Shown here piece after piece: positions 325 through 36,886 of a stretch of DNA of 64,000 nucleotides. The DNA is from Macrostomum lignano (Eukaryota): contig NIVC01000112.1 in the NCBI GenBank assembly GCA_002269645.1, positions 1-64,000 of the forward strand, given 5' to 3'. The first letter of the stretch is position 1. Each line of letters begins with the position of its first letter. The notes beneath the pieces are model-generated. The model saw nothing but the letters and a program-made list of their open reading frames with translations, did not search any database and was not told where the DNA came from. Position numbers and translations under genes: made by a program.

Positions 325-2663
325 GTATTCGTGCCAGACGTGCACCCGGACTACAAGCCCCGCCAAATGCACAGCAACTTGCACAGGCCACAGCATGATC
401 ATTCCCGCGCCAAATCGATACGAAGATTACCAGACTGTTCTGACCAATGCGCTGTCGTTTGCCTCCACTCCACCGGAGCTCGGGTCACCGACGTGCAGAG
501 CTTCAACATCACCACCTGCGGTTGGTGCTCTATGTACTTGTTCTGTCTCTACTCTCTTGCCTTGCCCATCTCCCTCTCCGATCTCCCAACCCCCCTATCC
601 CGTCTCCCCTCCCATCTCCCTCTCCCGTCTCCATCTCCCCTATCCCGTCTCCCTTCTTCCAATTCCCATCTCCTATCTCCCCTCTCCGATCTCCGATCTC
701 CCCTCTCCGATCTCCCATCTCCCCTCTCCCGTCTCCCCTCCCATCTCCCCTCTCCCGTCTCCCATCTCCCCTTCCCGTCCCATCTCCCCTCTCCCGTCTC
801 CCATCTCCCTCTCCCGTCTCCCATCTCCTCTCCCGTCTCCCATCTCCCCTATCCCGTCTCCCCTCTTTCACTTCCCATCTCCCATCTCCCTCTCCGTCTC
901 CCCTCTTATCTCTCCTCGTCTCTCCTTCCCCCTATCCTACGAGTAGTTTCCATCTCCTATAATCTCTATCATTCCTATCCTTTATCTGGCCTGCTTTTCC
1001 TGTCTCCCACGTCTCCCACGTGTGCTTACCTAGCAAAAGTGTCCATACCCATACCGATACACCCGCAGACTTCCTAATGAGCCCGGTGCAAATCGCTCTG
1101 CGCAGTCAACGCGAGGCGGACGATCAGCAGCAGCTGGGGCCCAGCAACATGAACAAACTGCTGCAACTTGACGGCAACATGTCTTATGAGTTCCTGCCGG
1201 CTGGCGTGCCCTTCAGGGAGCACACCTGCATCCGGTGAGGAGAGCTGTGCTCAGGGGAAATGTGTACAGAGAGGTGTACCGGTACAGAGATGTTTACAGA
1301 AGGATGTGTACAGATGTGTGTACGGATAGATATGCACAGATATTTGTTCAGAGGCGTGTACAGATGGGTGTGTACAGATATTTGTTCAGAGGCGTGTACA
1401 GATGGATGTGTACAGATATTTGTTCAGAGGCGTGTACAGATGGATGTGTACAGATGGGTGTGTACAGATGGATGTGTACAGATGGTGTGTACAGATGGTG
1501 TGTACATATGGATGTGTACAGATGGATGTTTACAGATGGGTGTTACAGATGGATGTGTACAGATGGGTGTGTACAGATGGATGTGTACAGATATTTCTTC
1601 AGAAACGTGTACAGATGGATGTGTACAGATGGATGTGTACAAATGGATGTGTACAGATGGATGTGTACAGATGGGTGTGTACAGATGGATGTGTACAGAT
1701 GGGTGTGTACAGATGGATGTGTACAGATGGGTGTGTACAGATGGATGTGTACAGATGGGTGTGTACAGATGGGTGTGTACAGATGGGTGTGTACAGATGG
1801 GTGTGTACAGATGGATGTGTACAGATAGGTGTACAGATGGGTGTGTACAGATGGGTGTGTACAGATGGGTGTGTACAGATGGGTGTGTACAGATGGGTGT
1901 GTACAGATGGATGTGTACAGATGGGTGTGTACAGATGGGTGTGTACAGATGGATGTGTACAGATGGATGTGTACAGATGGGTGTGTACAGATGGGTGTGT
2001 ACAGATGGATGTGTACAGAGTTTTTTTCAGAGGTGTGTACAGATGGATGTGTACAGAGGTTTGTTCAGAGGTGTGTACAAAGATTGTACACAGGGAGTGT
2101 GTTCAAAAGAAGTGTGTACAGAAGTGATAGATCTGAAATCAAGCGAAATCCCTCATTAATTCCCCACCCAGGTGGCCTACGTGAAGTCGCCTCTCACAGC
2201 CGGGCTGCAGACAGGCCTGCCCACAAACTCGGGCCTGGTGACCTCGAAGCTGTTTGTGCCCGACCGGATCTCGGTGAAGAGTTTCGAACCGCTGAACAGA
2301 TTCATGCAGCGACTGCTTGATGGCGCGCCAAGGCCAGTGAGTGGCTCCAGTGTTTACGTGCGCTCTGATTCCTCAATCTGGGACAACTAGAATCCTCATA
2401 AATTAGAGTCCCCACAAACTACATTGCTCATAAACTAGAGTCCTCTTAAACAAGATTTCTCATAAACTACTTTGAAACTTGCTCTTGCTTTCAGACTGTA
2501 GAGTTCTCACTGCCGAGACATTCAACATGTACGTGGACCCGACTGCTGCGTCCATTAATACAGAGCTCACCTACAGGCCTGAGCTGGCTTACAACGGACG
2601 ATACCGACTCACCGTTGTCAGGTGCGTTCAATACTGTGTTCACAGTTCACTGTTTGAGCTCTC

Positions 2664-2755
<92 letters not shown>

Positions 2756-2814
2756 GGCATTAAGACAGACACACACACAGACAGATAGACAGACAGATAG
2801 ACAGACAGACAGAC

Positions 2815-2851
<37 letters not shown>

Positions 2852-2878
2852 GGCATTAAGACAGACAGACACACAGAC

Positions 2879-2923
<45 letters not shown>

Positions 2924-2950
2924 GGCATTAAGACAGACAGACACACAGAC

Positions 2951-2989
<39 letters not shown>

Positions 2990-3006
2990 TAGACCGACAG
3001 ACACAC

Positions 3007-3043
<37 letters not shown>

Positions 3044-3252
3044 TAGACAAACAGACAGACAGACAGACAGACATTAAGACAGACAAACAGACAGACAGAC
3101 GGACAGCCGCCCGGCACTGCACCCGCAGGATGCTGTTCGATGGCCCGAGCTTCGACCTGCCGCCGAGTTTCTCTTACATTCCGCAGAAGCAGCCGCCTGC
3201 AGGCGGTGCCGCTCAGCCCAGCAACTCCTGCTGCTCCTGCCAGCTGCTGTAG
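325..3252 (+). CDS. 3' part of a multi-exon gene of unknown function, C-terminus ...PSNSCCSCQLL* (CaaX)
   Basis: GC-rich exons with AG/GT boundaries at 325-520, 1069-1234, 2172-2336, 2495(or 2502)-2621 and 3129-3252 (TAG). Exons 1-2 and 4-5 join in phase; exon 3 does not join cleanly. No family recognised. Confidence 0.6.
545..960. repeat. Intronic CT-rich low-complexity repeat (CTCCCATCTCCCCT/CTCCCGT)
   Basis: Directly visible between exons 325-520 and 1069-1234. Confidence 0.85.
1260..2125. repeat. Intronic minisatellite, 14 bp unit GTGTACAGATGG(A/G)T
   Basis: Tandem units visible; explains the repetitive ORFs at 1235-2320. Confidence 0.92.
2665..3105. repeat. (ACAG)n microsatellite in the last intron of the first gene
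   Basis: Directly visible, with occasional GGCATTAAG interruptions. Confidence 0.95.
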
Positions 3253-4940: not shown

Positions 4941-6210
4941 TTAACGCAACTTCTGATGATGCGAACTAACGTAGAGCATGAGCTTCTCCAGACTGTCGAA
5001 TGTCATCTCTGGATTGCGTCTGACTGTGAAGGTCTCCTGGAAATGGAATTGCTTTCTTATTGCTTTTAAGACTTGATTGCACCATAAGAGCCAACCCCCC
5101 CCCCCCAGGAAAGTCAGCTGCTGTACATCCTTCCTGAGCTTAATGGGGGCCGGTGGTCAAGCGCGGGGCTCTGATGTCCAAGCAAGCTCAGTCTCGATTC
5201 CAGGTGAAGTCAAATTATTTTGGGGCTAAATCGGAATCTCGGCTTGGCTCTGCTCGTGCAATTAACGGCCTTGAGGCCCGGCCCCCATGGCACAGTGAAG
5301 TGTACATGTCTAATGATAAATAAAGTGGGGCCCTCCTGTGTGAGTGTGTGCCTGCTCAGTAATGCCTCTCGCCGGGGTGCACACCTAGCCCCTGCTTCAA
5401 ACTAATAAAAACGCATGCAATCAACAATTGGCTTACATCGAAGCAGCGATATTCGCTGGATTTGACATCGATCGGGCCCTTGTACTGGTAGCTGTTGGAC
5501 AGCTTCACCTGCAGGATTGGCACGGGCTCCAGCGACAGGTCGGTGCTGCTCTCGTTCTGCACGGTGACGGGTCCGAGTTTCTTGGTCTCGATGAGTACGC
5601 TGCCTCCGCGGGTCCCGCAGCCCGGGAGCTCTTCGGTCTCCTCCTCGATCTGCTGGCCCAGGTAGCGCTTGATGTTCCGCTCAACTTGTCTGGAGGGGGA
5701 AATCGGAAATTTCCGGATTGCTTTTTCTAATCCGGTTGATTAGGAGTAGTAGGAAATGGTACGGTCTGGTGCACGTTGCTGATTAGCTGGCCAATCAGCG
5801 ATGGGGAGGCCCTGGAGGCGGGGTGTGTTGACCAACGAAATCATGCTCGGACCACCAGGACTCTCGACCAATCGAATTCCTTCCTCACATACCCCTCAAC
5901 TCGGAAATTCCGAGGAAATCGGTGCCCTTCTAAATGCTTTCTCGACCAATAGAATCTCTTGCCCCACAATACCCAGCTAATCGGAAATTCCAAGCAATCG
6001 GACCCTCTAAGGGAGCGACCCCACTCCTCGGCCTGTCCCACCCCGCCTCCGAGGCCTCCCCCTCGCTGATTGGCGGGTAGATTCGGGTAGATTACCTCTG
6101 TCTGTCTGTCTTAGTGTCTGTCTATCTGTCTGTCTTAGTGTCTGTCTGTCTGTCTTAGTGTCTGTCTGTCTGTCTGTCTTAGTGTCTGTCTGTCTGCCTG
6201 TCTGTCTTTG

Positions 6211-6255
<45 letters not shown>

Positions 6256-7564
6256 TTCTGTGTGTCTGTCTGTCACTTTTACCTCGATTCTGTCCTAGTG
6301 TTAAAATATTATAAACTTATTGACTCGATCTAAAATCTTGAGCATCTCCAACCGTCAGGATGTACATGTACTTGATGACTCACTCGGACAGCTGACAGGG
6401 GGTCGTCAGGCGGAGACCCATGCGTCTCTGGCTGTTATTCAGTGTCAGCTCCAGTTCATGCTGGTGATAGTGGACCAGCAGCTCCTCCAGTGAAGAGAAT
6501 TTCACGAGTGGCTCGGCCCAAATCTTGCCCTGCAATTATTTCAGTTGGCTCTATAAGGCTATCTTATTCACGGCATGAAGCAACTCTAGGGTAACCAGGT
6601 CTCACCAACTCTCATTGTCACTCTAAAATCATTCTGGCACTCTCATTGTCACTCTCACTATCATTCTGTCACTCTCTTTGTCACTCTCACTATCATTCTG
6701 TCACTCTCTTTGTCACTCTCACTATCATTCTGTCACTCTCTTTGTCACTCTCTTTGTCACTCTCACTATCATTCTGTCACTCTCTTTGTCACTCTCTTTG
6801 TCACTCTCACTATCATTCTGTCACTCTCTTTGTCACTCACAGCCGAGCGCTCCAGGGGCAGCTTAACGAGCTGGCCATTGTGAGAGGCGTACAGGAACAG
6901 GCGATTGGTCGCTGCGTCGCTCACGGCGGCAAATGTGCCGCTCGGCGCGCCTCCAAACAGCCTGCGAAATTTGCGGGTTTTGATCTTTCAGCGCTTATCG
7001 GTGCTGGGCAGATTAAATGATTTATGCTAATGGAATTTTGAAACTTACTTTTGACACAGGACCCGGTCGCCCAGGGTCCAAGCTGCAGCACAGTGAAAAC
7101 TGATGGCTCTGCAGTGATGAAATTAAGGCTTGCAAGTCTGTGTCTGTCTGTGTGTCTGTCTGCCTGTCTGTCTGTCTCCCTGTCTGCCTGTCTCTCTGTC
7201 TGTCTGTGTGTCTGCCTGTCTGTCTGTCTGTCTGCCTGTCTGTCTGTCTGTCTGTCTGTCTGTCTTTCTGTGTGTCTGCCTGTCTGCCTGTCTGCCTGTC
7301 TGCCTGTCTGTCTGTGTGTCTGTCTGCCTGTCTGCCTGTCTGCCTGTCTGTCTGTCTCCCTGTCTGCCTGTCTGTCTGTCTGTCTGTGTGTCTGTCTCCC
7401 TGTCTGCCTGTCTGCCTGTCTGCCTGTCTGTCTGTGTGTCTGTCTGCCTGTCTGCCTGTCTGCCTGTCTGCCTGTCTGCCTGTCTCCCTGTCTCCCTGTC
7501 TGCCTGTCTGCCTGTCTCCCTGTCTGCCTGTCTGTCTGTCTGTCTGCCTGTCTGTCTGTCTGCC

Positions 7565-7601
<37 letters not shown>

Positions 7602-7620
7602 GCCTGTCTGCCTGTCTGCC

Positions 7621-7653
<33 letters not shown>

Positions 7654-7676
7654 GCCTGTCTGTCTGCCTGTCTGCC

Positions 7677-7721
<45 letters not shown>

Positions 7722-7740
7722 GCCTGTCTGCCTGTCTGCC

Positions 7741-7773
<33 letters not shown>

Positions 7774-7776
7774 GCC

Positions 7777-7809
<33 letters not shown>

Positions 7810-7828
7810 GCCTGTCTGCCTGTCTGCC

Positions 7829-7861
<33 letters not shown>

Positions 7862-7884
7862 GCCTGTCTGTCTGCCTGTCTGCC

Positions 7885-7929
<45 letters not shown>

Positions 7930-7948
7930 GCCTGTCTGCCTGTCTGCC

Positions 7949-7981
<33 letters not shown>

Positions 7982-7992
7982 GCCTGCCTGCC

Positions 7993-8030
<38 letters not shown>

Positions 8031-8064
8031 CCTGTCTGCCTGCCTGTCTGTCTGTCTGCCTGTG

Positions 8065-8109
<45 letters not shown>

Positions 8110-11100
8110 GCCTGTCTGTCTGTCTGTCTGTCTGTCTGCCTGTGTGTCTGTCTGTCTGTCCGTCTGTCTGTTTCTCCGCCCTTCCATCTTCTCACTCATC
8201 GCCGTCAAGCGGTCTAAGGAGCCGGACCCCGGTCTCTGGATTGGAATCGCTAACGGGCAGGTCAAAGATGTGGTGGTGGTACAGCAGCTGGCTCATGCTG
8301 TGGTGGCGCTCCTCCGATGGCAGCACCTTGAACCCGCCGCTCTGCTCGCACACCTGATAGGTGGCCACCCGTCTGCCAGTCTGCACGAGCAGCAGAAACA
8401 GTTTAAGCGGCTTGCTGGATGTGAAACCAACAACGCAGAAAGTGCCGCGCGGGTTTGGTAGAGCTTCCTGTTGGGAAATTTGAGGGTCGTTTTAGTATCT
8501 CGGGCTCTCTAGAGTAACTGTTGAGGGCACCTGGGTGTCCTGGATGTCTATACGTCTCACATGACCTGTTTTTAGGTCAGTTCCGTAATCCCAGACACAG
8601 CCAATGAGACACAGCCACCAATGAGACACAGCCAATCAGACACAGCCAATCAGACACAGCCAATTAGACACCGCCAATCAGACACAGCCAATCAGACACA
8701 ACCAATTAGACACCGCCAATCAGACACAGCCAATCAGACACAGCCAATTAGACACAGCCAATCAGACACAGCCAATCAGACACAGCTACCAATCAGACAC
8801 AGCCAATTAGACACCGCCAATCAGACACAGCCAATCAGACACAGCCAATTAGACACCGCCAATCAGACACAGCCAATCAGACACAGCTACCAATCAGACA
8901 CAGCCAATCAGACACAGCTAATTAGACACCGCCAATCAGACACAGCCAATCAGACACAGCTACTAATCAGACACAGCCAATCAGACTCACACAGTAGCTT
9001 CAGCCGCTTGTCCAGCCGGGTTCTGATAGGCCTGATAGAAATATCTCACTGACGCGTCGATCGGCTGGTAGCTGGTCACCATTTTCTCCAGCCCGCCAGC
9101 GGCAGAAGCAGAAGCAAAACCAGAGGCAGCTGTAGCGGCAGCAGGCAATCGAGGCTTCGGTGGCAGCGGCTGCTGCGGTCGTGAAGGTCTCGAGTCATTG
9201 TTCGAAGTCATCCAGGCCTTTGCAGCAGGTGGGTCGGTGGCATCTGGAATTTCGTAGTGGTCCTCGTCGGCATGGCCGGTCGCCAGTTCAGCCGACGGTT
9301 GTGGAGACTCCGTTGCCTCATCGTAGACCTCTTCCACCTGCGATTCAGACTGCCTGTTGGCTAAGGCTGCCGTCATTCCAGAATCCATGGCGTCATCGTA
9401 GATCGCCTCATCGGCCGGCGTTTCAAAACTCGGCTGCGGATCGTCCGGAATCTGCCTGGGTAGCGTGCCGAACGACTCTTCGTAGGAGTTCGGTTTGGAC
9501 TTTTTGAGGCCGAGGTTGGCGAACGGGAACTTCTGATGGTATTGGGGGGGGGGGGTTGCAGTTCCGTGAGGGCCGCATGCGACACAAGCGGCTTTTCCAG
9601 CTCAGCATCAGAAGGGATGGGTTTGATGAGGATCAGGTGATAAGAGATAGGGTGTAGCAGGTGATGCTGAGGATATGTGGATGGAGCAGGTGATGCTGGG
9701 GAACTGTGGATGCAGCAGGTGATGCTAAGGATCTGTGGATGCAGCAGGTGATGCTGAGGATCTGTGGATGGAGCAGGTGATGCTGGGGAACTGTGAATGC
9801 AGCAGGTGATGCTGAGGATCTGTGGATGGAGCAGGTGATGCTGGGGAACTGTGGATGCAGCAGGTGATGCTGAGGATCTGTGGATGCAGCAGGTGATGCT
9901 GAGGATCTGTGGATGGAGCAGGTGATGCTGGGGAACTGTGGATGCAGCAGGTGATGCTGAGGATCTGTGGATGCAGCAGGTGATGCTGAGGATCTGTGGA
10001 TGGAGCAGGTGATGCTGGGGAACTGTGGATGCAGCAGGTGATGCTGAGGATCTGTGGATGCAGCAGGTGATGCTGAGGATCTGTGGATGGAGCAGGTGAT
10101 GCTGGGGATCTGTGGATAGAGCAGGTGATGCTGGGGATTTGTGCATGGAGCAGATGATGCTGGGGATCTGTGGATGGAGCAGGTGATGTTGAGGATCTGT
10201 GGATGGAACAGGTGATGCTGGGGATCTGTGGACAAAGGAGAAGATTCTGGAAGGAGATCAGGTCGAGTCTCTACCTACAAAATCCCTGCAAATAATTTCA
10301 AACCTTCGGCGTTCGCCTCGGCAGCGGAATGTCGTGCATGCTGTCCAAGTTTGTCCCGTCCGCGCTGTCGCTTTCTCCAGAGAAGGCTCCGTTGTCTTGG
10401 GCAATGGAGTTTTCGCCAGCTTCTGCTGCTTCAAGAGCGTCGGCTTTGGCCTGCGAGCGCAGCGCGATCATCAACCTGCGGTAGGCCAGCAGACCTTCTT
10501 CGCGTCGACGCCTTGCCAGCTCGTCAAGCTCGGCGGACTTGCCCTCCCGGCCTCCGACGCTGTTCTTCAGGGGCCGCTCCCAGCTGTACGCGTCCGTCCA
10601 GCCGAGCTCAAGCTCGCCGCTGGACTCGGGCCGACACACCGTGGCGTCCGTGCGAGCTCGCAGCCGGCAAAACAGCATGCCCTTCGGCCTGTGGTGTCGC
10701 TTCTCCATCGAGTCGAAGCTGTGGTTGGTTGGTTAGTTTTTCGGTTCGCGGTAAACATCGTGAAATTGCCTGCTCCATGCACAGCTCCCCAGCATCACCT
10801 GCTCCATGCACAGCTCCCCAGCATCACCTGCTCCATGCACAAATCCTCAGCATCACCTGCTCTATCCACAGATCCCCAGCATCACCTGCTCTATCCGCAG
10901 ATCCCCAGCATCACCTGCTCCATGCACAAATCCTCAGCATCACCTGCTCCATGCACAAATCCTCAGCATCATCTGCTCTATCCGCAGATCCCCAGCATCA
11001 CCTGCTCTATCCACAGATCCCCAGCATCACCTGCTCTATCCGCAGATCCCCAGCATCACCTGCTCCATGCACAAATCCTCAGCATCACCTGCTCCATGCA

Positions 11101-13810
11101 CAAATCCTCAGCATCATCTGCTCTATCCGCAGATCCCCAGCATCACCTGCTCTATCCACAGATCCCCAGCATCACCTGCTCTATCCGCAGATCCCCAGCA
11201 TCACCTGCTCTATCCGCAGATCCCCAGCATCACATCCTCCATCCGCAGATCCCCAAAATCACCTGCTCCACCCGCAGATCCCCAGCATCACCTGCTCCAC
11301 CCGCAGATCCCCAGCATCACATCCTCCATCCACAGATCCCCAGAGTCACCACCCGCAGATCTCCAGCATCACATCCTCCATCCACAGATCCCCAGAATCA
11401 CCACCCGCAGATCCCCAGAATCACCACCCGCAGATCCCCAGAATCACCACCCGCAGATCCCCAGAATCACCACCCGCAGATCCCCAGCATCACCTGCTCT
11501 ATCCGCAGATCCCCAGCATCATAGGAGATAGGAGTGCTAATAGGAGATCTGTTGTTGTTAAACGGGTGTGGGAAGCCGGGGGCTACCCGCGGATCAGCTC
11601 TGGGAGGGGCTCTGCCGCTGAGGGGCACTTCCAGGGGCCTTAGCCCGAGATACCCCGAGGTTGGACCCTGACGTCTGGGCCAGGGGAGCTACTAACCCAA
11701 GCCTTATGGACTAAGACACCGCCAACCCAATATTAGTGGAATCAGGGACGGTGCAAGGAAATTCCACCCAGGCCACCACCCAGCAGACAGATCTCGGGAG
11801 TGCGCGAAAAAATAATTGGAATAAAAAATGTTTGGGTTACTACTGAAAGCGGTCCGAGAGCAGGGAATATCCTGAAGTCTTAAATGGCTTAATATTGGAG
11901 TGAGTCTGGAAGGCTTGTTTCCGAGAGCGAGTCTCCTGTCAAGGGGTAAAAGCTCCTAAAATCCTCTTATAGGGCTGCAAGCCTCAAGGGTATCACTTAT
12001 CCAGCTCTATATTGGAGGCCAGGCCAAGGGGGCGGCGGAGAGGGGCACAAGGGGCAAGAGGAAACCGGACTCAGCCGGTTTTCCCCGATTCGGGACGAAC
12101 ATCCAGCCCAGCTAGGACTCCAATCCACTGTCAGAGATGAGAGCCAAGACACAATAGGCAGGGAGACAACCAGAGGAGACAACAGATGGACCGGGCAGGT
12201 AGGGCAGAGCTCATAACTCCAAGATTTGGAATGGCAATCTAATGGTCGGGTAAAATACAAAGGGATAAAAACACGGGGATGCCAGCCCAGATAAAAACAC
12301 AAAGAATGGCAGAATGGGAGGAGCACCTGAACCCTAACCCGGGGCCAGCCTCAGGGGGGGGGGCTCAAGTCCCGTTCTAGCCACACTGCAGTCCAGATCT
12401 CCAACTCACTCCAGGTACACCCCCCCCCCTAACCCAAGGCCGAGGGCCAAATTGATTGGATAGCAATAAAAAGGGTTATTTTTAGATCAGGCACAGCCCC
12501 TCCAGGGCGGACCCTAAGAACATTGGGCTAGCGAGAGCTAGGCCAATTGAATTGCGCACAACCCGAGAAATGCCATCTTTCGTCTCACTCTTTCTAGCAT
12601 TGAACTGAAGCCTTCCATTATGTAATATTTTGCTTAGTGTAGCCTACTTATAGTAGCATCTCATAAATGTATCCCAGTTATAAATTTTCTCTACAAGATC
12701 GAGAAATCCGCTGAAATCATAACAGTTTAAACAAATTGGAAGCTTACTAGTATTGGCACAGCAGGTGGTACTTTTGACAAATTGCAGACTTCTCGGCGTT
12801 GCGGAATAAAAACAAATGACCGGCACGGATCACCGCCCAGTAGTGGCACCCTGGGGTGTGGAAATTGAAGATTGTTACAGTGCTTACAGACCCCTAATCT
12901 GGTACAGTGCTTACAGACCCCTAATCTGGTACAGTGCTTACAGACCCCTAATCTGATACAGTGCTTACAGACTCCTAATCTGGTACAGTGCTTACAGACC
13001 CCTAATTTAGGTACAGTACAGGTAACAATCTGGTACGGTACAACTAGACTCCAATCTGATACAGTACAGCTAGACTCAAATCTGGGTACATTACAGATAG
13101 ACTCCAATCTGGTACAGTACAGGTCACAATCTTGTACAGTATAACTAGACTCTAATCTGGTACAGTACAGCTAAACTCCAATGTGATACAGTACAGGTCA
13201 CAATCTGGTACAGTACAGCTAGACTCCAATCTGGTACAGTACAGGTCACAATCTGGTACAGTACAGCTAAACTCCAATGTGGTACAGTACAGCTACATGT
13301 AGACTTTAATCTGGTACAGTACAGGTCACAATCTGGTACAGTACAGGTCACAATCTGGTACAGTACAGGTCACAATCTGGTACAGTACAGGTCACAATCT
13401 GGTACAGTACAGGTCACAATCTGGTACAGTACAGGTCACAATCTGGTACAGTACAGGTCACAATCTGGTACAGTACAGGTCACAATCTGGTACAGTACAG
13501 GTCACAATCTGGTACAGTACAGGTCACAATCTGGTACAGTACAGGTCACAATCTGGTACAGTACAGGTCACAATCTGGTACAGTACAGGTCACAATCTGG
13601 TACAGTACAGGTCACAATCTGGTACAGTACAGGTCACAATCTGGTACAGTACAGGTCACAATCTGGTACAGTACAGGTCACAATCTGGTACAGTACACAA
13701 GCTCTTACATTGATCCTCTTTGTCGTCATCAAACCAGTCTCTCAAACAGATGAAGCCTTTGTACAGCACTTTGCTGTTGTCATTGGGCAGAATTTTGTCA
13801 ATGAGGCCAG
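4941..13810 (-). CDS. PH-like domain + Tyr/Pro-rich linker + three tandem degenerate SH2 domains (SH3BP2-like architecture); 5' end not found
   Basis: Exons in transcript order: 13810-13709, 12850-12748, 10718-10304, 9532-8991(or 8993), 8467-8196, 7108-7049, 6961-6841, 6529-6384, 5689-5437, 5036-4941 (TAA). All junctions are AG/GT and phase-compatible except 8991/8467. PH-like: VLYKGFICLR..WCHYWAVIRAGHLFLF..ELELGWTDA. SH2-like: PRGTFCVV..HSMSQLLYHH; PSGTFAAV..KFSSLEELLVHY; RGGSVLI..TFDSLEKLMLY. Confidence 0.75.
5140..5400 (+). mobile_element. tRNA-derived SINE-like element
   Basis: A-box-like TGGTCAAGCGCGG and B-box-like GTCTCGATTCC, followed by the body shared with 3866-4110. Confidence 0.45.
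5791..6073. mobile_element. Small intronic foldback/MITE-like element with ~35-bp imperfect inverted repeats
   Basis: CCAATCAGCGATGGGGAGGCCCTGGAGGCGGGGTG (5791-5825) is nearly the reverse complement of 6039-6073. Confidence 0.55.
6098..6275. repeat. (TCTG)n microsatellite, intronic
   Basis: Directly visible. Confidence 0.93.
6615..6840. repeat. Intronic minisatellite of TGTCACTCTC(TT/ACTATCATTC) units abutting a splice donor
   Basis: Directly visible; ends at the donor ACTCAC (6835-6840). Confidence 0.85.
7136..8170. repeat. ~1 kb (CTGT/CTGC)n microsatellite, intronic
   Basis: Directly visible; explains five long spurious ORFs at 6921-8461. Confidence 0.97.
8590..8985. repeat. Intronic minisatellite, 14 bp unit AGACACAGCCAATC
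   Basis: Directly visible; abuts the donor at 8985-8990. Confidence 0.92.
9655..10230 (+). repeat. 29 bp minisatellite GCAGGTGATGCTG(A/G)GGATCTGTGGATG(C/G)A, left arm of an inverted pair
   Basis: Tandem units visible; reverse complement of the array at 10768-11522. Confidence 0.92.
10768..11522 (-). repeat. Same 29 bp minisatellite in opposite orientation (CAGCATCACCTGCTCTATCCGCAGATCCC), right arm
   Basis: Tandem units visible; degenerates to shorter CAGAATCACCACCCGCAGATCCC units near 11340-11490. Confidence 0.92.
12875..13697. repeat. Compound intronic minisatellite: 27 bp unit (TACAGTGCTTACAGACCCCTAATCTGG) grading into a 22 bp unit (TACAGTACAGGTCACAATCTGG)
   Basis: Both units visible; they share AATCTGGTACAGT. 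Confidence 0.92.
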
Positions 13811-15602
13811 CTGGAAAAGCATTAATTAAGTTGATGATGCATTTATGTATGAACAGCTCCTCACACACAAAGATGGGTCTAAATTAAGTTACATGAGCAA
13901 ATGATGTAAACTAAATACCTGTTAACTTCTCCCAACTAAGGGGCTGATTAACAGAACTGTTATTTGTTGGCTCGAGTTCCATTCGCAATGTTCCAGTTCG
14001 GCAGCTCGAAATGAATGATAGTATATTGTGGAACTAATTCTCTTTGAGCTTAAGTGAGCTGAGGCGAAATCCTTGACAGTTTAAAAACGGAGAGATTTTT
14101 TTTGCTTTTTAGCTTCTACAGAAGAAGACTGAGCTATAGGACCCGCTGCTCACTGCATGCATGGCCAAGGCAGCCAAGCCTTAGTTGGAGAGATAGTTAT
14201 CTTTTAAAGTTTCTCTGCCAGTTAGATAAGAATGCGTGCGCTCGCGGGGCTCGACTCAACAACTGTTTGAGTTGCATGTGGCAGCTGCTGCGGTGTGTCC
14301 GCAGTGTGCAAGCATGCAAAGTTTAACTAACAGACATCATTTTACTGCAGATTTTTTATCTACTTTGAAGTAATTTCTATTTTATGCACATAATTAATAG
14401 GCACTAATTACAGACATGCGCTATATGAGAGCCAGCTAGATCATATTCCCGGGGCATTACGTAACGGTTACTAAAAATTCTGCTTGCTTCTTAATATATA
14501 ATAGTGCAGCTTCGGTGCAGCAAGTCGGACACATGTTGGCCAAAATATTTTTTATCATTTACTGGCAATAGAAATCAGTATAGATAAGCCTGCGGGGGCT
14601 CTGGAAACTTGCCTAAGTCGGTTTAATTGCAACCATATTTGTTTTCGTTTCGGTTATTTTAGCTCGCTAGAGATAGAGCTGTAGATAAAGTTATTAGACT
14701 TTTACAGACCGCAGCACGGTGGCATCCGCAATTGGCATCTCAGCTTTGCACAGCTAATATGCACATGCATTGCACATGTACTTGACACTTACTTTGACTT
14801 AGCTGCAAGGGGCGTCCGGCGGATGCAGCGAGGAGGCGGAGGAGACCGCGCCAATTTCGCTAGCCCCTGGCGACCAATGACTTCCATTGAAGCGATGTCG
14901 CTCAGGGGGGCCCGTCAGTCTCGCCTGCAGCGCGGTCCTCCTCACCGGCGGTGGGGGAGAACTCAGTTTGTCCCGTGTCCCTGAGGTACCAAGCGAGCAG
15001 CGGGATTCTCTCGCGGGCCTGCAAACGTCGGAGAGAACCGGGTTTGGCCAGGTGGGGGTGAGTTGTGCACTTGCTACAGACGCAATTACGTACAATTGCA
15101 TGTCCTGTGTCTAAAAACCATTAAATTGGCGCGGCTCAGCTCTACTGTGACATGCATTTTTATGGTTTTTAAGGTACAAGAAAATGTACGTAGAATAAAA
15201 AATTAACAAGAGTCCTAATTTTCTGAACAAAAAGCTTTATGAATATCGATCAATAGAGCTATCAAGAAAGGCACAATTTCTATAGCAAAAGATGAACATT
15301 GGATCTGCTTCCTATCGAAAACAATAACAATTTTTATGCTGAAAAATGAAAACTTCTATCCCCGTAGTGTCTTTTTCGGCGAAAAGTGGCCTTCAAGGCA
15401 TTTTCCATAGAGTTCGAGCTTGTTGAGTCCTACTTTAGCAGTCCTTGACATGTACTCGTACTTTTTGTATAATTTTCGTAAAACATCCAAAGTTAAATAG
15501 AAAGAATTGCTTGATGGACAGATAGGATAGAAAACAAGGGGGAGAAATAAGAACAAAAAACTGTATGAATTAACTCTGGTCATAGACAATTTGTCTTGAC
15601 AT

Positions 15603-17506
15603 GTTCATGACAGCACTGACATCCGAGGTCCCATCATCAGGCAGACGCGGCTCAACATCGAGCGACTCAGCAGAAACCGGAGGCCCACAGGCGACGCTGA
15701 AGATGCATTTGAGCGCCTTCTAGACGAGCGGCAGCAGGCCGCTGTCGACGACGCCATTAGGTCCATCACTGCAGCCGGCCCCGACGTGAAGAGCCGCGCA
15801 GTGTGGACGGCCGTCCGGACTCTGACGGGGCGCAAAAAGCGCGTGGCGCTGAACCTGGCCGGCGACACCCCGGAGGAGCGCAGGAATGAATTGCGCGACT
15901 TCTTCGCCGGCATCGTGAACGCGCCCGCGTCGCCGCTGCCCGCCAGCTTTGCGCTCCCACTGGACACGCCGCTCCCAGCTGAGGAGGACTTCTGCACCAG
16001 GCCAGTCACCACGGAGGATGTTGTGCTGTACGCTCGGAAAACATCAGGCGGCAAGGCGCTCGGCCCCGATGAAGTCCCGGTCGAAGCGCTGCGGCTCCGC
16101 TGTGTGGCCTCCCAGGTCACAGGCGTCATGAACCGCGTGCTCGCCGGCGCTCTTGCGCTTACCGAGTTGACAGTCGCGCACATCGTGCCGATCCCAAAGA
16201 AGGCAGGGACAATGCGGAAGGAAGACCACCGCGGGATCTCGCTGATGTCCTGCACCGCGAAGCTCTTCAACCGGCTGCTGCTCGATCGTCTGCAGTCGGT
16301 GCTGGACCCGTACCTGCGGTACGAGCAGAACGGATTCCGGCCGCAACGCGGTACAGTGACACAGATCCTCGCACTCCGCCGTGTCATCGAGGAGGCGCGC
16401 ATCCGCCAGTCTACGCTGATCATTGTCTTCGTTGACTTTCGAAAGGCGTTTGACTCGGTGTTGAGAGCCGCGCTTCCCTTCGTCCTTCGAGCCTACCGGG
16501 TACCCCAGCAGCTAATCGACGCTGTCATGGCGCTGTATTGCGATACTCGAGCTGCTGTGGTGACGGCGGACGGCCTGTCTGACCTGTTCGATACCTCATC
16601 AGGAGTTCTGCAGGGCGACACGCTAGCGCCGTTCCTCTTCGTTCTGCTGCTGGACTGGGTGCTTCGGACCGCACTCCCCTCGGCTAATGACGGCTTCCTG
16701 CTGCGCAGACGCATCGGTCACCGCCACGGCGAAAAACGCCTAAGCGTGCTTGGCTACGCTGACGACCTCGCCCTCCTGTCCTCGTCCGTTGAAGGCGCCC
16801 AGCGCCAGATTGACAGGCTGGTCGAGGTGGCATCGAGCGTTGGTCTGATCGTCAACACGCTGAAGACCGAGGTGCTGACTGTGCCGGCCGACATCCCAGC
16901 GGACCTGACATGTCGCTTCGCAGACGGGCAGACGACCAGGCTCGCACGCTGCCAGCGCGCGGTTCACCTACCTCGGCGGTCTGGTGCCCCACGTGGAAGG
17001 ACCTCCGGCGGCGCAGAGGACTTGCCTGGGCGGCCTTTTGTTCGATCCGGGCCGTCCTCCAGTCCGAAGCGCTGCCCGACCGCCAGAGGGCTCGGCTGTG
17101 GCAGGCGGTGGTCGAAACCGTCCTGCTATACAACGCCGAGACGTGGACGCTGAGGGCTACGCTAGAGCGGCAGCTGGACTCGGCGCACTCAGGGCTGCTC
17201 CGTGCGGCCTTTCGAGCTGACGAGAGCGTCGGGACCGAGGCCCTGTACGATTGGGCCAAGCTGCAGCGCCCGTCCATCATTCTGCGCCGGCGGCGACCTC
17301 AACTGGCGGGTCACGTGATCCGGGCTGAGGGCTACTGCCCCCAACCTGTTCAGGACTTTCTGCTGCTCACCTTGCAGGGTCCGTTCAGGCGGGGTCAGGC
17401 CCGAACCCGTCGATACGTGGACTGCCTGCTGTGCGACGCTGGGGCGCCCGACACTGCCAACGGAGCGGACTTTGTTCGCTCCCAGGCTCTGCGGCGCGCC
17501 ATCTGA
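15603..17506 (+). mobile_element. 5'-truncated non-LTR retrotransposon (RTE-like) reverse transcriptase, frameshifted
   Basis: RT motifs in ORF 15786-17153: GKALGPDEV, PIPKK, RGISLMS, EQNGFRPQRGT, FVDFRKAFDSV, GVLQGDTLAPFLF, LGYADDL (YADD 16755-16766). FTYLG and DLRRRRGLAWAAF continue in other frames after shifts at ~16955-17000; stop at 17506. No endonuclease domain present. GC-rich relative to flanks. Clade assignment is tentative. Confidence 0.88.
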
Positions 17507-30148: not shown

Positions 30149-31656
30149 GCTACCACCAGCCTCGCAGCAACCAAGTACTTTTTGATAGGACTGTGTGTAC
30201 TTTTTCGTGATTCCATGAGTCTACGTCTGTTTTGTGTGTCATTGTAATTTTTGTTTTCAAGTGCGCCACCCAGCAGCAAGCAAGATCCTCGTGCACCTTT
30301 TCCCGCTTGAGCAGCCTGTCGCAGTCGGCTTTTTATTTTCTACAGCAACAAAACTAATTAAGTAGCCTCATCCCAATAATTCAATCAGTTCCCAGTCGTG
30401 AATCTATTAAAACTAATCAATCACAGTCTTGGATTTCTAGCTCGCTTTTTTCGCCATACATATTACTTTTCTCTTTGTAGCAGTAGCAGTAGTAGCATGT
30501 TGCTGTCTATTTTTAGTTATTCCAGATGAAAATATCTGTTTTGTTACGTAGGTACCCAGCAAAGCACTGTTAGCAATAGCAGAAATTGCTTATTAAAAAA
30601 TTCCAAACCCCTATTCACCGATGACTATTATTATGATCATTTAATAAATAAATATTGCAATTCTTCTATTATATTGCCACTGCTATTTAAATATTTATCT
30701 GTCTCTCCCCGAGCCCATTGCGCAGCAGTTCTCTCTAATTGTATTGTTTTTTGCTTTTTCTGCAGTCAGTTTCTTGTGTTCAGTTTTGTATGCTGATCAT
30801 TTATTTACCATATTATTAATATTATTATTGAGCTGCGCGTCCCCTCGGAGCATTTTCACCAAATGCATTGGCAAGCCTGTCGCGAACAGCCTATGATACC
30901 CCCATACTAGTATAATCCCTCCAGCTTATCCCCTACATAGTGCAAATGGATTAACAAATATATTTAATTATCAATTCAAAATCAGAGCCAGCGGCTTGGC
31001 AATAAATTAATTAACATCATCTCTACAGCTCTGTGAAAGTTGATTGACAGTCAAAAGATATCCATCAAATTTCTGCACACGTCTGCTCATGATCTTTTAT
31101 AATCAGCGACTTGAGTCATTTGGGTTTGGAGTTCGAATCCGGAGTGGCAATGAATTGAAAACGATCCGATAGAGAAGAGAAATGAATGAGCTGATAGCTG
31201 TGTATTTCTGAAGTCTCCAGGACCTGCACAGTGCAAAGTTAGTCTCACTTAAAGGTGAATTAAAAAACTAAAAAATGGTGCTAAATGTTAGCACTTGAAT
31301 CTGCGATTGCACTTTGACACAGCCGTGCTGTTTGAGCACTTAGAAATGTTGCCATTAAAATTAATATGCGGAACAGTTAAAAAACCAGGGCATGAAAAAA
31401 TGACCGACAAAAGCAACCTAGTGGAGTAGCATCAAAACTATGCACGCTGGTGCTTAGGGGAGATTGCACATTATTTACTGGGATATATATTATACTAATG
31501 CAAGTAAAAAAGGCTACTGGCCTAAAGAAAAAAAGGCAAATTATTGCAATTCTTGGCAAAGAAAACACAATTTGAGACTCTGACCGGTAGCAATTACGGC
31601 ACAAAAAATTAAAAACTGAAAAAAATCAATAAATCCACAGGTACACAGACGCCAGT

Positions 31657-34600
31657 CTAGCAGTCCTCCCGTCCGTACATATCCTCAATCGCCTTTCTGT
31701 AGCGGTCCAGCAGCTGCCGCCGGCGCAGCTTGAACGAGTCGGTGACGAGGCCAGACTCCGGCAGCCAGGCGGTCTCAGCGCACAGGTGCACCCGGGCCGG
31801 AGTCTCGAACCGCTCCAGCCGACCCTTGGCCGCGGCGGTCAGCTCGTCTAGGGCCGCCTTTCTCAGCCGAGGGTCGGACAGCAGCGCCTCGTCCGGCTGG
31901 AGCCCGTCGCCGTTGGCGTGGCTCTGACCGCCGCCTGTGGCGTCAGTTGGCACTGGCCGGAGGCCCAGCTGTTGCGCCAGCTGCATCAGCCGGCGTCGTT
32001 TCGGCACAACCAGCAGCACCACGAAGTCGCGGCGACTGTCGGCATAGGCGCACAGCTGCTCCACAATTGGCGAGCTGCTGAGCGCCAGCTCCACCTTGCC
32101 CAGGGACACGTACTCGCCTCCCTGCGGCAATGGTTGATAGAGTTGGCATCGGGCACATCATGACACCGATAGCTCACTGATATTCCAGATTGGAACAAAG
32201 ACTAATTTGATAGCTCACTGATATTCCAGATTGGAACAAAGACTAATTTGATAGCTCACTGATGTTCCAGATTAGAACAAAGACTAATTTGATAGCTTAC
32301 TGATATTCCAGATTAGAACAAAGACTAATTTGACAGCTCACTGATATTCCAGATTAGAACAAAGACTAATTTGATAGCTCACTGATATTCCAGATTAGAA
32401 CAAAGACTAATTTGACAGCTCACTGATATTCCAGATTAGAACAAAGACTAATTTGATAGCTCACTGATATTCCAGATTAGAACAAAGACTAATTTGATAG
32501 CTCACTGATATTCCAGATTAGAACAAAGACTAATTTGATAGCTCACTGATATTCCAGATTAGAACAAAGACTAAGTTGATAACACACAGCATAAAAACAA
32601 AGACTAATTTTGACTGATAAACTATTAAACAAACAAAGACCCACCTGCAGCTTGACCAGGTCTTTCTTCCTGTCCACAATCTGCAGTCCGGCTGTCCCGG
32701 CCACCTGTCCAACATCGCCGGTGCAGAACCATCGCACGCCGCAGCCGTCAGTCCAGAAGTCTTGGCCGGTCAGCTCGGGCATTTGAAAATACCCGGCCGT
32801 TACGCAGGGCCCCCCGATGAGCAGCTCGCCTCTCGGCCACGGCTTGTCCGCCTTGGAGTAGCCGCCCTCCGGCCAGTCCCGCAGGCGCAGCAGGCAGGAG
32901 TCCAGCGGAGGCCCGGCCGAGCCCAACGGGGTGGCGGCCAGCGGCTGGTGGCCGGGCCCGGGGCTGGCCTGTATGCAGCCGGCGCCGCAGGTCTCGGTGA
33001 GGCCGAAGCCCTGCACCACCGGGCTGCCGAATGCCGACATGGCGAAGGTGTGCGTCTCGGCCGACAGCGGGGCGCCGCCGGACAGCATAAGGCGCAGCCG
33101 GCCGCCCAGGATAACGCTCACCTGCGGGAGTTTTGGTGTGGGATTTTTTGGGTGTGGGATTTTATGGTGTGGGATTTTATGGTGTGGGATTTTATGGTGT
33201 GGGATTTTATTATGTGGGATTTTTATATGGGATTTTTTGGTGTAGGATTATTTTATATAGGATTTTTTGGTGTGGGATTATTTTATATGGGATTTTTTGG
33301 TGTGGATTTTTGTATATGGGATTTTATGATGTGGGATTTTTATTTAGGATTTTTGGTGTGGGATTTTTCGATAAGGGATTTTAGATGCGGGATTTTTTTA
33401 TGTGGAATTTCGGGTGTGAGTCTTGTTTTCGAGACTTTTTTGATTCCACATCTATGGGATTTAAACGCGGAGTTTATACAATTGTATAGAGATTTCCTCA
33501 ATCGGGTCTGCTTTACATGTACATTCGTATTTTGATTTCAAATATGCGCAATACCCGGCCTTACCTTCTTAAATACCAGCCGGTCAAGCAGCGGGGTGGC
33601 CCAGCCCCGCAGTCCCCAGCGAAGTTTGTAATCCAGCGCCCAGGTCAGCAAGGCGCGCCGATGGCGCCGCGCGCCTCTGCCCGGTCGCGAACAGCGCGCG
33701 AGGCGCGGTCCAGCACTGCGGGCACGGCGGCCATCAGGCTGGGCCGCAGTGCGGTGGCGTCGCCAGGTGTGCCAGGCTTCACCTGCCGGGCAGTTTGGAG
33801 GCTTTGATCTTGCCGACAACCAATTAATTACATAACTGGAGGCTTTGATCTTGTCAATTACCAATTAGTTAAAAAAAACAGGACTTTTTGATCTTGCCGA
33901 CAACGAATTAGTTAAATAACTGGACTCTTTGATCTTGCCGACAACTAATTAGTTAGAATAACTGGACTTTTTTATCTTGCCGACAACTAATTAGTTGAAA
34001 TAACTGGACTCTTTGATTTTGCTGACAACTAATTAGTTAGAATAACTGGACTCTTTGATCTTGCCGAAAACTAATTAGTTAGAATAACTGGACTCTTTGA
34101 TCTTGCCGACAAATAATTAGTTAAAATAACTGGACTCTTTGATCTTGCCGACAACTAATTAGTTAGAATAACTGGACTCTTTGATCTTGCCGACAACTAA
34201 TTAGTATTCACCGCCAGGCAATGCCTCGCCTCACCTTATTGGACGCATCCGTCAGCGTCAGCGGGCTGCCGTAGCCGATGGCGACTCCGCAAGCCAGACA
34301 AGCCAGCTCAGCTGCCAGCTCCAGCACGTGAGCCAGCGGCAGGTAAGCCAGGTAGCTGTCATCGGCCCGACTCCCCAGCTCGGGAATTCGCCTGGCAACG
34401 CCGGCTGCCATCGCCAGCAGGTTGGCGTGGCTGATCATCACTCCCTTAGGCTGGCCCGTGCTGCCACTGGTGTACATCAGCACGGCCAGGTCGCCCGGCT
34501 CCGACACCGCCGCCGCCGCTGTATCGTCCTCCGTCGCATCGTCGACATCCTCGCCAATCAGCTGACTGAGTCCGACCAGCCGCACCGACTGTCGACTTTC

Positions 34601-36886
34601 GGCAGGCCTGCCCGACACTAGTGCCGATTCATCGCCAACTCCGCCGTCTAGGTAGATGACGCACCGGATGTTGGGCATCTGATCCAGCATCTTGGTGACC
34701 TTGTCCAGCAGGCTCAGCGAGGTCACCAGCACTGCAGCCTCCGACTGGTTGACGCCGTAGGCCAGGGCATCCTCGCCCAGGCTGGCGTACAGCGTCACCA
34801 CGGGCAGGCCGCAGCGGAAGCAGGCCTGAGCGCACAGCTGCCAGTCTGCCCGGGTCTCCGCGTACAGAGCCACCCGAACGCCGGGCCTGAGGCCGAGCTG
34901 CTGCTGCCGCTGCGAGCGGAGACTCTTGGCCAGTTGAATAACCCGACGGTGAACTGAGCGATAACTCAGCCAGCTGTAGGGGCCCAGCGACTGCTTCTTG
35001 AACTTGCGACCGTCTGGTTGAAGCTGGTGAGGGGGTTCAGATGTCGATGGCTCAGTCACGGGGTTGAGAAACTTTTCGTTATGATAGTTAGATACGCTGG
35101 GAGTCTATGATGACTCTTTGACTAAATGAGTGACTCTATGACTAACGGAGTGACTCTATGACTAACGGAGTGACTCTATGACTAACATAGTGACTCTATG
35201 ACTAACGGAGTGACTCTATGAATAACGGAGTGACTCTTTGACTAAATAAGTGACTCTATGAATAACGGAGTGACTCTATGACTAACGGAGTGACTCTATG
35301 ACTAACGGAGTGACTCTATGACTAACGGAGTGACTCTATGACTAACGGAGTGACTCTATGACTAACGGAGTGACTCTATGACTAACGGAGTGACTCTATG
35401 ACTAACGGAGTGACTCTATGAATAACGGAGCGACTCTATGACTAACAGAGTGACTCTATGACTAACGGAGCGACTCTATGACTAACAGAGTGACTCTATG
35501 ACTAACGGAGTGACTCTTATGACTAACAGAGTGACTCTATGACTAACAGAGTGACGCTATGAATAATGGAGTGACTCTTATGAATAACGGAGTGACTTTT
35601 TGACTAAATGAGTGACTCTATGAATAACGGAGTGACTATGATTACTGTAATGATTTCATGACTGCTTGGATGACTGAGACTTCATGACAATCAAATTGAC
35701 CTCATGACTATGAACTGTGGCAAACACTGACTAAATAACAAGGACTCTATAGAAATTTACAACAATCCGAATTCAATCTACGTATATTAAGCAATCAAGC
35801 CCTAAAAGCAGATTACGAGCGTACAAATAAAATCTTGATCATTTTCATTGGTTTGTAATGAAAATTTTCAAAAAGTCACCAAAAAGCCAAAAATCAAATT
35901 CAAAGTGTTCGCTAAAATATTTAGACTAAAAAATTCAGGCCAAGTGTGAATTATCAGCACACAGTTAGCTCGTACAGCAGCCCTTCAAAGCAAATTAATT
36001 GCAATTTTGAGAAGCAATTTTGCCGCTAAGCAAGCGCAGGTGAATTGCACAGCCAAACAGAGTTAATATCTGTATGTATGCAGTACCTGAACTGTCAATG
36101 GGACAGTCTGTGACTGTCTGAGCTGGTGTGCGATCTAAATCTGAAAATTTTTTATACAGTCATGTTTAATAAGGAAGATGCAGAAATGCAATTTGGGATC
36201 CAATGAATGTCTTAAATAACTGTCTGTCTGTCTGTCTGTCTGTGTGTCAGTCTGTCTTTCTGTCTGTGTCTGTCTGTCTGCCTGTCTGCCTTAGTGTCTA
36301 TCTGTCTGTCTGTCTGTCTGCCTTAGTGTCTGTCTGTCTGTCTGTCTGTCTTAGTGTACCGATCAGTCTGTCTGTAATGAAACAGTTCAGATTCAGGCCA
36401 ATTAAAAATTCAACAAACCTGCTATAAAGTTCACAAAGTCCCTCAACTATTGAACTTACAGTTACTCAAAATACGAGCAATATCAATCGACCAGCATTAG
36501 AAGCTCACCTCGTCTGCCTCCGCCAGCAGCTGCCGGGTGCCAAAGCAGCGCCGCTCGGGGTACTTGCCAGCCGCTTGATCCAGCAGATCTGCCAGATTCT
36601 CAACTCCGGCAAAGGGCCTGCTAGCCAGACAGTCAGGCACTGACTTGCCAGTCTCCGCAGCCGCCTGCGCCACAGCTGAGCTGGCCCACACAGCTGGGCA
36701 GCTGCCATCTTCATCAGTTCCCGGATAGTCAACTTTCACGGTAGCTACTACAGCCTGTTGTTTGCTACTACTAACAGTAGTCGAATTTGGCCAAAATGTC
36801 AAATTAGCGGCATAGTATAGAGGCAGTGTGACTAGACTGTACAATCCTGATACTGCATCCATAGACCAGATTAAAAAGTTTTGCAT
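31657..36886 (-). CDS. ACSL3: Long-chain fatty acyl-CoA synthetase, ACSL3/ACSL4 type, 5 exons
   Basis: Exons 36886-36509, 35023-34235 (LMYTSGSTGQPKG, YLAYLPLAHVLEL), 33782-33565 (1-nt shift near 33655), 33121-32645 (SGGAPLS, QGFGLTETCG, WFCTGDVG, IVDRKKDLVKLQ), 32121-31657 (GEYVSLGKVE..LVTDSFKLRR). ACSL3 versus ACSL4 cannot be resolved. Confidence 0.9.
32165..32590. repeat. Intronic minisatellite, 41 bp unit
   Basis: GATAGCTCACTGATATTCCAGATTAGAACAAAGACTAATTT, about ten copies. Confidence 0.93.
33130..33420. repeat. Intronic degenerate ~15 bp repeat (TGTGGGATTTT..)
   Basis: Directly visible. Confidence 0.85.
33800..34205. repeat. Intronic minisatellite, 42 bp unit
   Basis: GATCTTGCCGACAACTAATTAGTTAGAATAACTGGACTCTTT, about nine copies. 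Confidence 0.92.
35100..35640. repeat. Intronic minisatellite, 20 bp unit ACTAACGGAGTGACTCTATG
   Basis: Directly visible. Confidence 0.94.
36220..36372. repeat. (CTGT)n microsatellite in ACSL intron 1
   Basis: Directly visible. Confidence 0.9.

Follow-up and report, generated by a model that had tools for sequence, protein, structure and literature searches.

A predicted docking adaptor of Macrostomum lignano with tandem SH2-derived domains that lack the FLVR arginine

SH2 domains are the textbook readers of phosphotyrosine. What, then, could be the role of a protein in which every SH2-like domain lacks the arginine of the FLVR motif? The question is raised by a minus-strand gene in the first 64,000 nucleotides (nt) of Macrostomum lignano contig NIVC01000112.1 (assembly GCA_002269645.1, positions 1 to 64,000 of the forward strand; hereafter the window). 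An earlier note, made from the sequence alone, had described this gene as a lineage-specific scaffold with a PH-like region followed by three SH2-like repeats devoid of that arginine. Our analysis points to a lineage-specific docking adaptor whose SH2-derived modules would have been repurposed for phospho-independent interactions, a reading to which we assign a probability of roughly 0.6.

Splice-site enumeration and six-frame translation yield 11 phase-consistent exons with GT-AG introns on the minus strand, which encode a product of 723 amino acids (aa). The ten exons proposed earlier (13810 to 4941) are recovered, with the start at 13810 and a stop codon ending at 4941, but they lack a start codon and require an eleventh exon, namely: an ATG exon at 13982-13919, which joins them in phase. 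The strings reported at the FLVR site, i.e. GTFCVVG (8446-8426), GTFAAVS (6939-6919) and GSVLIET (5604-5584), all lie on the minus strand within this single model, and the C-terminal helix motif is indeed kept in repeat 1 (HSMSQLLYHHH), repeat 2 and repeat 3. The exons are as follows:

13919..13982, minus strand: exon 1 with the ATG (MELEPTNNSSVNQPLSWEKLT); start identical to that of the GenBank proteins PAA90348.1 (P0001) and PAA90336.1 (P0003)
13709..13810, minus strand: exon 2, beginning of the PH-like region (KVLYKGFICLR); AG/GT sites, phase 1
12748..12850, minus strand: exon 3, PH-like (WCHYWAVIRAGHLFLFRN); splice model
10304..10718, minus strand: exon 4, completing the PH-like region (conserved Trp residues, LGWTDAYSW) and encoding a long predicted helix (aa 151-191); splice model and AlphaFold2 (AF2)
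8993..9532, minus strand: exon 5, disordered acidic linker with Tyr and proline motifs, and alphaA of repeat 1; splice model
8196..8467, minus strand: exon 6, repeat 1 from betaB to its end, betaB5 Val codon at 8431-8429; splice model, alignments, AF2 and Foldseek
7049..7108, minus strand: exon 7, alphaA of repeat 2 (AISFHCAAAWTLGDRVLCQ), alphaA2 Arg kept; splice model and alignment
6841..6961, minus strand: exon 8, betaB-betaD of repeat 2, betaB5 Val at 6924-6922 and betaB7 Asp at 6918-6916; alignment
6384..6529, minus strand: exon 9, repeat 2 from betaE through alphaB (FSSLEELLVHYH) to betaG; splice model and alignment
5437..5689, minus strand: exon 10, N-terminal helix and strands of repeat 3, Glu of GSVLIET at 5589-5587 as the betaB5 equivalent; hhalign
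4941..5036, minus strand: exon 11, C-terminal strands of repeat 3, alphaB-like helix (FDSLEKLMLYVSSH) and TAA stop; splice model and hhalign

A duplicate of the locus lies on the same contig, ~150 kb away and in the opposite orientation (L001; NIVC01000112.1:152945-182564); its sequence, including the introns, matches the window at 96-98% identity. Transfer of the 11-exon structure to L001 gives exactly P0001 (722 aa), which a word-indexed search identifies as ‘hypothetical protein BOX15_Mlig007324g1’, 97% identical to the window model. As the gene models of the Mlig_3_7 assembly are genome-guided transcript assemblies (PMC5730564), and L001 reproduces one of them, the exons, in the duplicate copy at least, share a single transcript rather than deriving from separate ones. 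The gene is therefore real rather than a chance arrangement: it is transcript-derived in the duplicate copy, and divergent paralogues have the same layout. The protein has already been deposited in GenBank and in UniProt/UniRef as an uncharacterised ‘SH2 domain-containing protein’, and a literature search for the gene IDs finds no paper that mentions them.

Are the repeats SH2 domains? We built per-repeat profiles from a small set of M. lignano paralogues and searched them against the PDB. The repeat 2 profile matches the tandem SH2 domains of PLCgamma1 (E=1.5e-7), VAV2 (1e-5) and p85 (1.5e-4), while repeat 2 of the window protein, used as a single sequence, matches the C-terminal SH2 domain of p85 at E=0.002. 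The repeat 1 profile matches the Src SH2 domain (0.004), and SH2 domains make up 36 of the 37 matches listed. By hhalign the two repeats align with each other over 102 columns (91%). Leave-one-out controls give 95% and 97%. AF2 with a four-row family alignment gives a predicted local distance difference test (pLDDT) score of 55-84 for repeat 1 and 51-70 for repeat 2, with the element order alphaA-betaB-betaC-betaD...alphaB in both; a single-sequence prediction of P0001 (mean pLDDT 36) is uninformative. When the model is compared with the PDB using Foldseek, the best 50 matches listed are all tandem-SH2 structures, headed by PLCG2 (2e-10) and followed by Syk, SHP2 and ZAP-70, over 215-390 aligned columns. 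Furthermore, repeat 2 of the paralogue P0011 (A0A1I8G3B9) scores 30.3 bits against the Pfam SH2 family (PF00017), whose gathering score is 21 bits; P0011 itself is connected to P0001 at E=2e-6, as searched among 1.84 billion sequences. Repeats 1 and 2 form a genuine tandem pair of SH2 domains. The claim of three tandem SH2-like domains is therefore borne out for the first two, while the third is only weakly demonstrable and is taken up below.

Alignment to Src, p85 and PLCgamma, together with hhalign, places Val421 (GTFCV-V-G), Val532 (GTFAA-V-S) and Glu642 (GSVLI-E-T) at betaB5, so that none of the three repeats carries the FLVR arginine. In repeat 1 the positions alphaA2, betaB7, betaD4 and betaD6 are occupied by Gly, Phe, Thr and Gln, respectively, which leaves the pocket wholly uncharged; the canonical Arg (alphaA2), His (betaD4) and Lys (betaD6) are gone. 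Repeat 2 keeps the alphaA2 Arg and has Lys at betaD4 and Asp at betaB7, the last of which is invariant across all paralogues. In LeSH1a of Legionella, Asp at betaB7 goes with an absence of phosphotyrosine binding (PMC6208348). SH2 domains only very rarely lose the FLVR arginine (3 of about 120 in humans), and the human domains without it, namely those of TYK2, RIN2 and SH2D5, do not bind phosphotyrosine through the betaB5 residue (PMC7530234).

Three paralogues bear on how this state arose: P0010 (A0A1I8FWC5), a protein of 735 aa that is 36% identical to P0001 and has the same layout of PH-like region and three repeats; P0011, a 289-aa fragment with 28% identity; and P0015 (A0A1I8FKK4), a further M. 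lignano sequence found by word-indexed search. All of them belong to the same family as the window gene, with the same proline motif and the same order of repeats. It should be noted that they are uncharacterised database entries, some of which come from poor gene models. The residues at betaB5 compare as follows:

Repeat 1, betaB5: Val in the window gene, His in P0010, Arg in P0011
Repeat 2, betaB5: Val in the window gene, Leu in P0010, Arg in P0011
Repeat 3, betaB5: Glu in the window gene, Arg in P0010; the P0011 fragment does not cover repeat 3

Since the arginine is retained in repeats 1 and 2 of P0011 and in repeat 3 of P0010, which reads G-S-L-V-R at the FLVR site, these comparisons indicate that the family comes from canonical SH2 domains and that the arginine has been lost secondarily, and independently in different repeats.

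An exhaustive phmmer search of P0001 against 1.84 billion representatives returns four proteins only, all from M. lignano, and word-indexed searches with the window model and with the family alignment return only near-identical M. lignano entries; the gene is lineage-specific, as had been proposed. Between the window copy and L001, the ratio of non-synonymous to synonymous differences per site (pN/pS) is 0.27 overall and, on the basis of just 15 substitutions, 0.13 across the three repeats (10.5 synonymous vs. 4.5 non-synonymous changes); in repeat 2 all 5 changes are synonymous. The repeats are under purifying selection. Because the low pN/pS is accompanied by a paralogue, P0010, that keeps the whole layout at 36% identity, the domains without arginine appear to be functional and not decaying. 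In addition, a literature search for proteins with three SH2 domains in tandem finds none described, in line with the earlier note, whose author knew of no protein with this exact architecture; where we checked it, the phrase ‘three SH2 domains’ refers to sets of three separate domains.

The N-terminal part of the protein is less clear, and the PH call is weak. At low confidence, AF2 predicts strands over residues 34-130 followed by helices, i.e. a beta-sandwich plus helix; P0001 and P0010 have the Trp residues W130 and W136 in common; and UniProt automatically names P0003 and a further copy, P0004, ‘PH domain-containing protein’. The PH-like region of the earlier note rests on these three features and receives no sequence support from Pfam or the PDB. 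A long helix is predicted after this region, at about aa 151-198. The linker that follows is predicted to be disordered and acidic, and it is rich in Pro and Tyr motifs up to the SH2-type repeats: it contains three Tyr motifs, EAIYDDA (9409-9383), EEVYDEA (9334-9308) and EDHYEIP (9265-9239), and a proline motif, PLPPKPRLP (9169-9143), the core of which (PPLPPKP) is conserved in all paralogues.

A number of results weigh against an intact adaptor built from a PH domain and three SH2-derived modules. The N-terminal region has no Pfam match to PH (PF00169) at E<=10, its two-paralogue profile finds 0 matches in the PDB, and its AF2 model has a pLDDT <50. The window protein and the protein P0007 stay below the Pfam SH2 threshold, with 13.7-15.4 bits for repeat 1 only. 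Repeat 3 has no Pfam match and no significant PDB match (E 0.2-1.3), its predicted helix-strands-helix order has a pLDDT <50, and the alphaB motif supplies much of its hhalign score (see below). In repeat 2, the alphaA2 Arg and betaD4 Lys leave room for a non-canonical phospho-ligand site. The small number of substitutions behind the pN/pS of the repeats belongs here as well. Finally, the window copy is frameshifted and the annotated proteins P0003, P0004 and P0005 are truncated, a pattern consistent with relaxed constraint where a neopolyploid genome provides redundancy.

The last of these points leads to the first alternative, namely that the window copy is a non-functional young pseudogene and that the losses of arginine may reflect the decay of redundant neopolyploid copies. 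Two small differences are concerned:

8451..8453, minus strand: C-run of 3 vs. 4 in the duplicate, at the start of exon 6 (1-nt difference vs. L001)
9117..9133, minus strand: 17-nt skip in the GenBank model P0003, which causes a frameshift and a 399-aa product (P0003 reproduced exactly)

All other copies have CCCC at this point and use a strong donor, TGT/GTGAGT (exon end 8991), so that they read AAEATVKL(Y/N)QTPRGTFCVVG. The C-run of the window is 1 nt shorter than in every other copy, so that the window copy as assembled has a 1-nt frameshift just 5′ of repeat 1: with the strong donor it runs into a stop at codon 467, and the exon 5/6 frame survives only via a weak donor, ACT/GTGTGA (exon end 8993). 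The only product annotated at the window locus is P0003 (399 aa, 13982-9000), a truncated, PH-only model; joining exons 1-4 to an exon 5 that lacks 17 nt at 9133-9117 yields precisely this protein, and the SH2 exons of the window are without any GenBank gene annotation. An annotation or assembly problem is thereby flagged at this locus. Mlig_3_7 is a PacBio/Canu assembly, polished with Pilon, that holds 180 Mb in blocks duplicated at at least 95% identity, and its transcripts were BLAT-mapped at at least 80% identity (PMC5730564). The duplicated blocks speak for redundancy; on the same grounds, however, a homopolymer error combined with cross-mapping of transcripts is as plausible as a real lesion, and a 1-nt homopolymer difference and a 17-nt skip are typical of PacBio or cross-mapping artefacts. 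The window copy, a recent duplicate, thus appears defective or mis-assembled, being either a young pseudogene or the product of an uncorrected PacBio homopolymer error. Decay of the domains themselves is countered by the substitution pattern of the repeats, by the intact, transcript-derived 722-aa copy and by P0010, whose full architecture at 36% identity implies that domains without arginine have persisted for long. We consider this first alternative, taken as a whole, to be rather unlikely, although the window copy by itself may well be a pseudogene.

The Ala/Ser-rich GCT/GCC tract of exon 5 (9117-9143), into which the 17-nt skip falls, carries indels between copies: L001 differs by 6 nt, and the skip is seen in P0004 as well as in P0003. 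This low-complexity tract is a hotspot of either real length variation or transcript-mapping artefacts that truncate the annotated models.

A second alternative is that the protein contains two SH2 domains only, and that the C-terminal ~115 aa have another fold in which the helix motif resembles that of SH2 by chance. Apart from the lack of significant PDB or Pfam matches and the low pLDDT, it draws on the hhalign comparisons of single repeats, in which repeat 3 aligns with repeat 2 alone only over the alphaB motif (24 columns, 46%) and not at all with repeat 1 alone. However, all 17 weak PDB matches of repeat 3 are Src-type SH2 domains, aligned in their C-terminal half, and the predicted order of helices and strands fits. 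Against a broader SH2 profile, which combines four canonical segments with the first two repeats of three paralogues, repeat 3 aligns over its full length (90 columns) in the expected register (probability 55%, P=1.2e-4, score 29.3). This score is ~9 standard deviations above that of 200 column shuffles (10.7±2.1, maximum 19.7, 0/200 reaching 29.3), and the reversed profile scores 10.1. In addition, repeats 2 and 3 have a phase-0 intron in common, located 10 and 12 codons, respectively, before the F.SLE helix, and P0010 retains G-S-L-V-R at the FLVR site. Addition of repeat 3 of P0015 to the repeat 3 profile destroys the weak SH2 signal; P0015 is probably a poor gene model. On balance, repeat 3 is probably a very degenerate SH2 domain, and a protein with only two such domains is unlikely. 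That repeat 3 instead adopts a PTB or PH-like fold is also unlikely, as both the full-length alignment in SH2 register and the shared intron position speak against this.

The third alternative, that phosphorylated (phosphotyrosine, phosphoserine/phosphothreonine) or acidic ligands are still bound through a non-canonical pocket, above all in repeat 2 with its alphaA2 Arg and betaD4 Lys, has precedents in p120RasGAP, whose ‘FLVR-unique’ C-terminal SH2 domain relies on other basic residues, and in the recognition of phosphothreonine and phosphoserine by the SH2 domains of Spt6 (PMC7530234), but it is distinctly improbable given the invariant betaB7 Asp of repeat 2, which LeSH1a shares while not binding phosphotyrosine (PMC6208348), and the absence of basic residues from all four pocket positions in repeat 1.

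With the docking adaptor as the preferred reading, how does the protein compare with known systems? The earlier note had likened it to SH3BP2 (3BP2), and the order of domains does agree: both have a PH-type domain at the N-terminus, putative in the adaptor, a linker with Pro and Tyr motifs, and SH2 at the C-terminus, and neither has a catalytic domain. SH3BP2, however, has one SH2 domain with the canonical FLVR Arg as opposed to three Arg-less SH2-type repeats. Its SH2 domain (2cr4) matches the repeats at E 0.13-1.4, ranked after Src, and no SH3BP2-type protein is among the matches of the exhaustive phmmer search. Orthology to SH3BP2 is therefore rejected, since there is no specific sequence similarity and there are three repeats instead of one; as judged from sequence, the resemblance is architectural.

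The tandem-SH2 proteins (PLCgamma1/2, Syk/ZAP-70, SHP2 and PI3K p85) provide the best profile and Foldseek matches and share two adjacent SH2 folds with the adaptor. They differ in having catalytic or regulatory domains, the canonical Arg in both SH2 domains and bidentate reading of phosphotyrosine, whereas the adaptor has a third SH2-like module, no betaB5 Arg and no catalytic domain; a Pfam scan of the 723-aa product finds no PLC, kinase or phosphatase domain. TYK2 and RIN2 (His at the site), SH2D5 (Trp) and the C-terminal SH2 domain of Spt6 resemble repeats 1 and 2 in that the FLVR arginine is gone and the fold is kept. In these cases, though, the exceptional domain stands alone within a conserved, widespread protein, while here all SH2-type domains of a lineage-specific protein are affected and the replacements are aliphatic or acidic. 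Finally, STAP1 and STAP2 (BRDG1/BKS) are small vertebrate docking adaptors with PH and a single SH2(-like) domain that are themselves tyrosine-phosphorylated. The searches that were run give no sequence link to STAP1/STAP2, and none of them was aimed at these proteins.

We propose that the locus is one member of a small family of cytoplasmic adaptors limited to Macrostomum, in which a PH-like N-terminus would lead, through a long helix and a disordered, acidic linker, to three consecutive SH2-derived domains. In the paralogue group Mlig007324/Mlig013114, the phosphotyrosine pocket would have been dismantled in all three domains with purifying selection retained. The SH2-like modules would then no longer read phosphotyrosine and may instead serve a phospho-independent protein-binding or structural role, by analogy with the SH2 domains of TYK2/JAK, the C-terminal SH2 domain of Spt6, SH2D5 and RIN2. 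By way of the YDDA, YDEA, YEIP and PxxP motifs of its linker, which probably also reach SH3 networks, the protein would probably still be a substrate or a docking site in tyrosine-kinase signalling, and it may work in parallel to, or in competition with, P0011 and P0015, the paralogues that retain the arginine. More tentative is the fuller proposal that Macrostomum has a family of its own in which a PH-type module is combined with three SH2-derived domains, a number that no characterised protein is known to have, and that in one paralogue lineage all three pockets have become independent of phosphotyrosine and been kept under selection.

The surroundings of the gene are rich in repeats. Nearly every intron has a different minisatellite, with periods of 14, 22, 29 and 32 bp. 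Exon 4 (10718-10304, 415 nt) is flanked by two arrays of ~570-600 nt (9650-10250 and 10769-11357) of the same 29-bp minisatellite in opposite orientation, which are 87% complementary, about 550 nt apart and also present in L001. By base pairing within the pre-mRNA, such inverted intronic arrays could cause exon 4 to be skipped or back-spliced more often. Intron 6 holds an array of ~1 kb (7141-8171) with about 129 copies of the 8-bp unit TGTCTGTC, and similar (TCTG)n-type arrays are found at 6097-6274 and around 2600-3100. The adaptor gene and a neighbouring HSP70/HYOU1-like gene occur twice on the contig, in inverted orientation and 96-98% identical (window 1-24000 vs. L001); this block is either a large inverted segmental duplication or a contig-end assembly artefact in a neopolyploid genome. 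The other features of the window are as follows:

15786-17506, plus strand: reverse-transcriptase open reading frame (ORF) with a match to Pfam RVT_1 (E=1e-29); the block around it is GC-rich (61%) and lies upstream of the adaptor ATG, at a distance of ~1.8 kb
31600-35100, minus strand: AMP-binding (acyl-CoA synthetase-like) enzyme
41792-42466, minus strand: DHHC palmitoyltransferase
45097-47559, plus strand: uninterrupted ORF of 820 aa with a rhodopsin-family seven-transmembrane match (E=1e-9) and an N-terminal extension of ~440 aa
62681-63850, minus strand: subtilisin-type proprotein convertase with P-domain

Because of its RVT_1 match, the reverse-transcriptase ORF is probably a retrotransposon fragment, and the 820-aa ORF looks like an intronless gene for a G-protein-coupled receptor.

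The general picture of phosphotyrosine signalling is unchanged by this finding. If the proposed reading is true, however, M. lignano would hold, within one genome, a natural series that runs from Arg-retaining to fully ‘pseudo’ SH2 domains. M. lignano is a model in which transgenesis and RNA interference are tractable, and homologous domains with and without the arginine would offer, in one genome, a natural comparison for the role of SH2 domains beyond the reading of phosphotyrosine.

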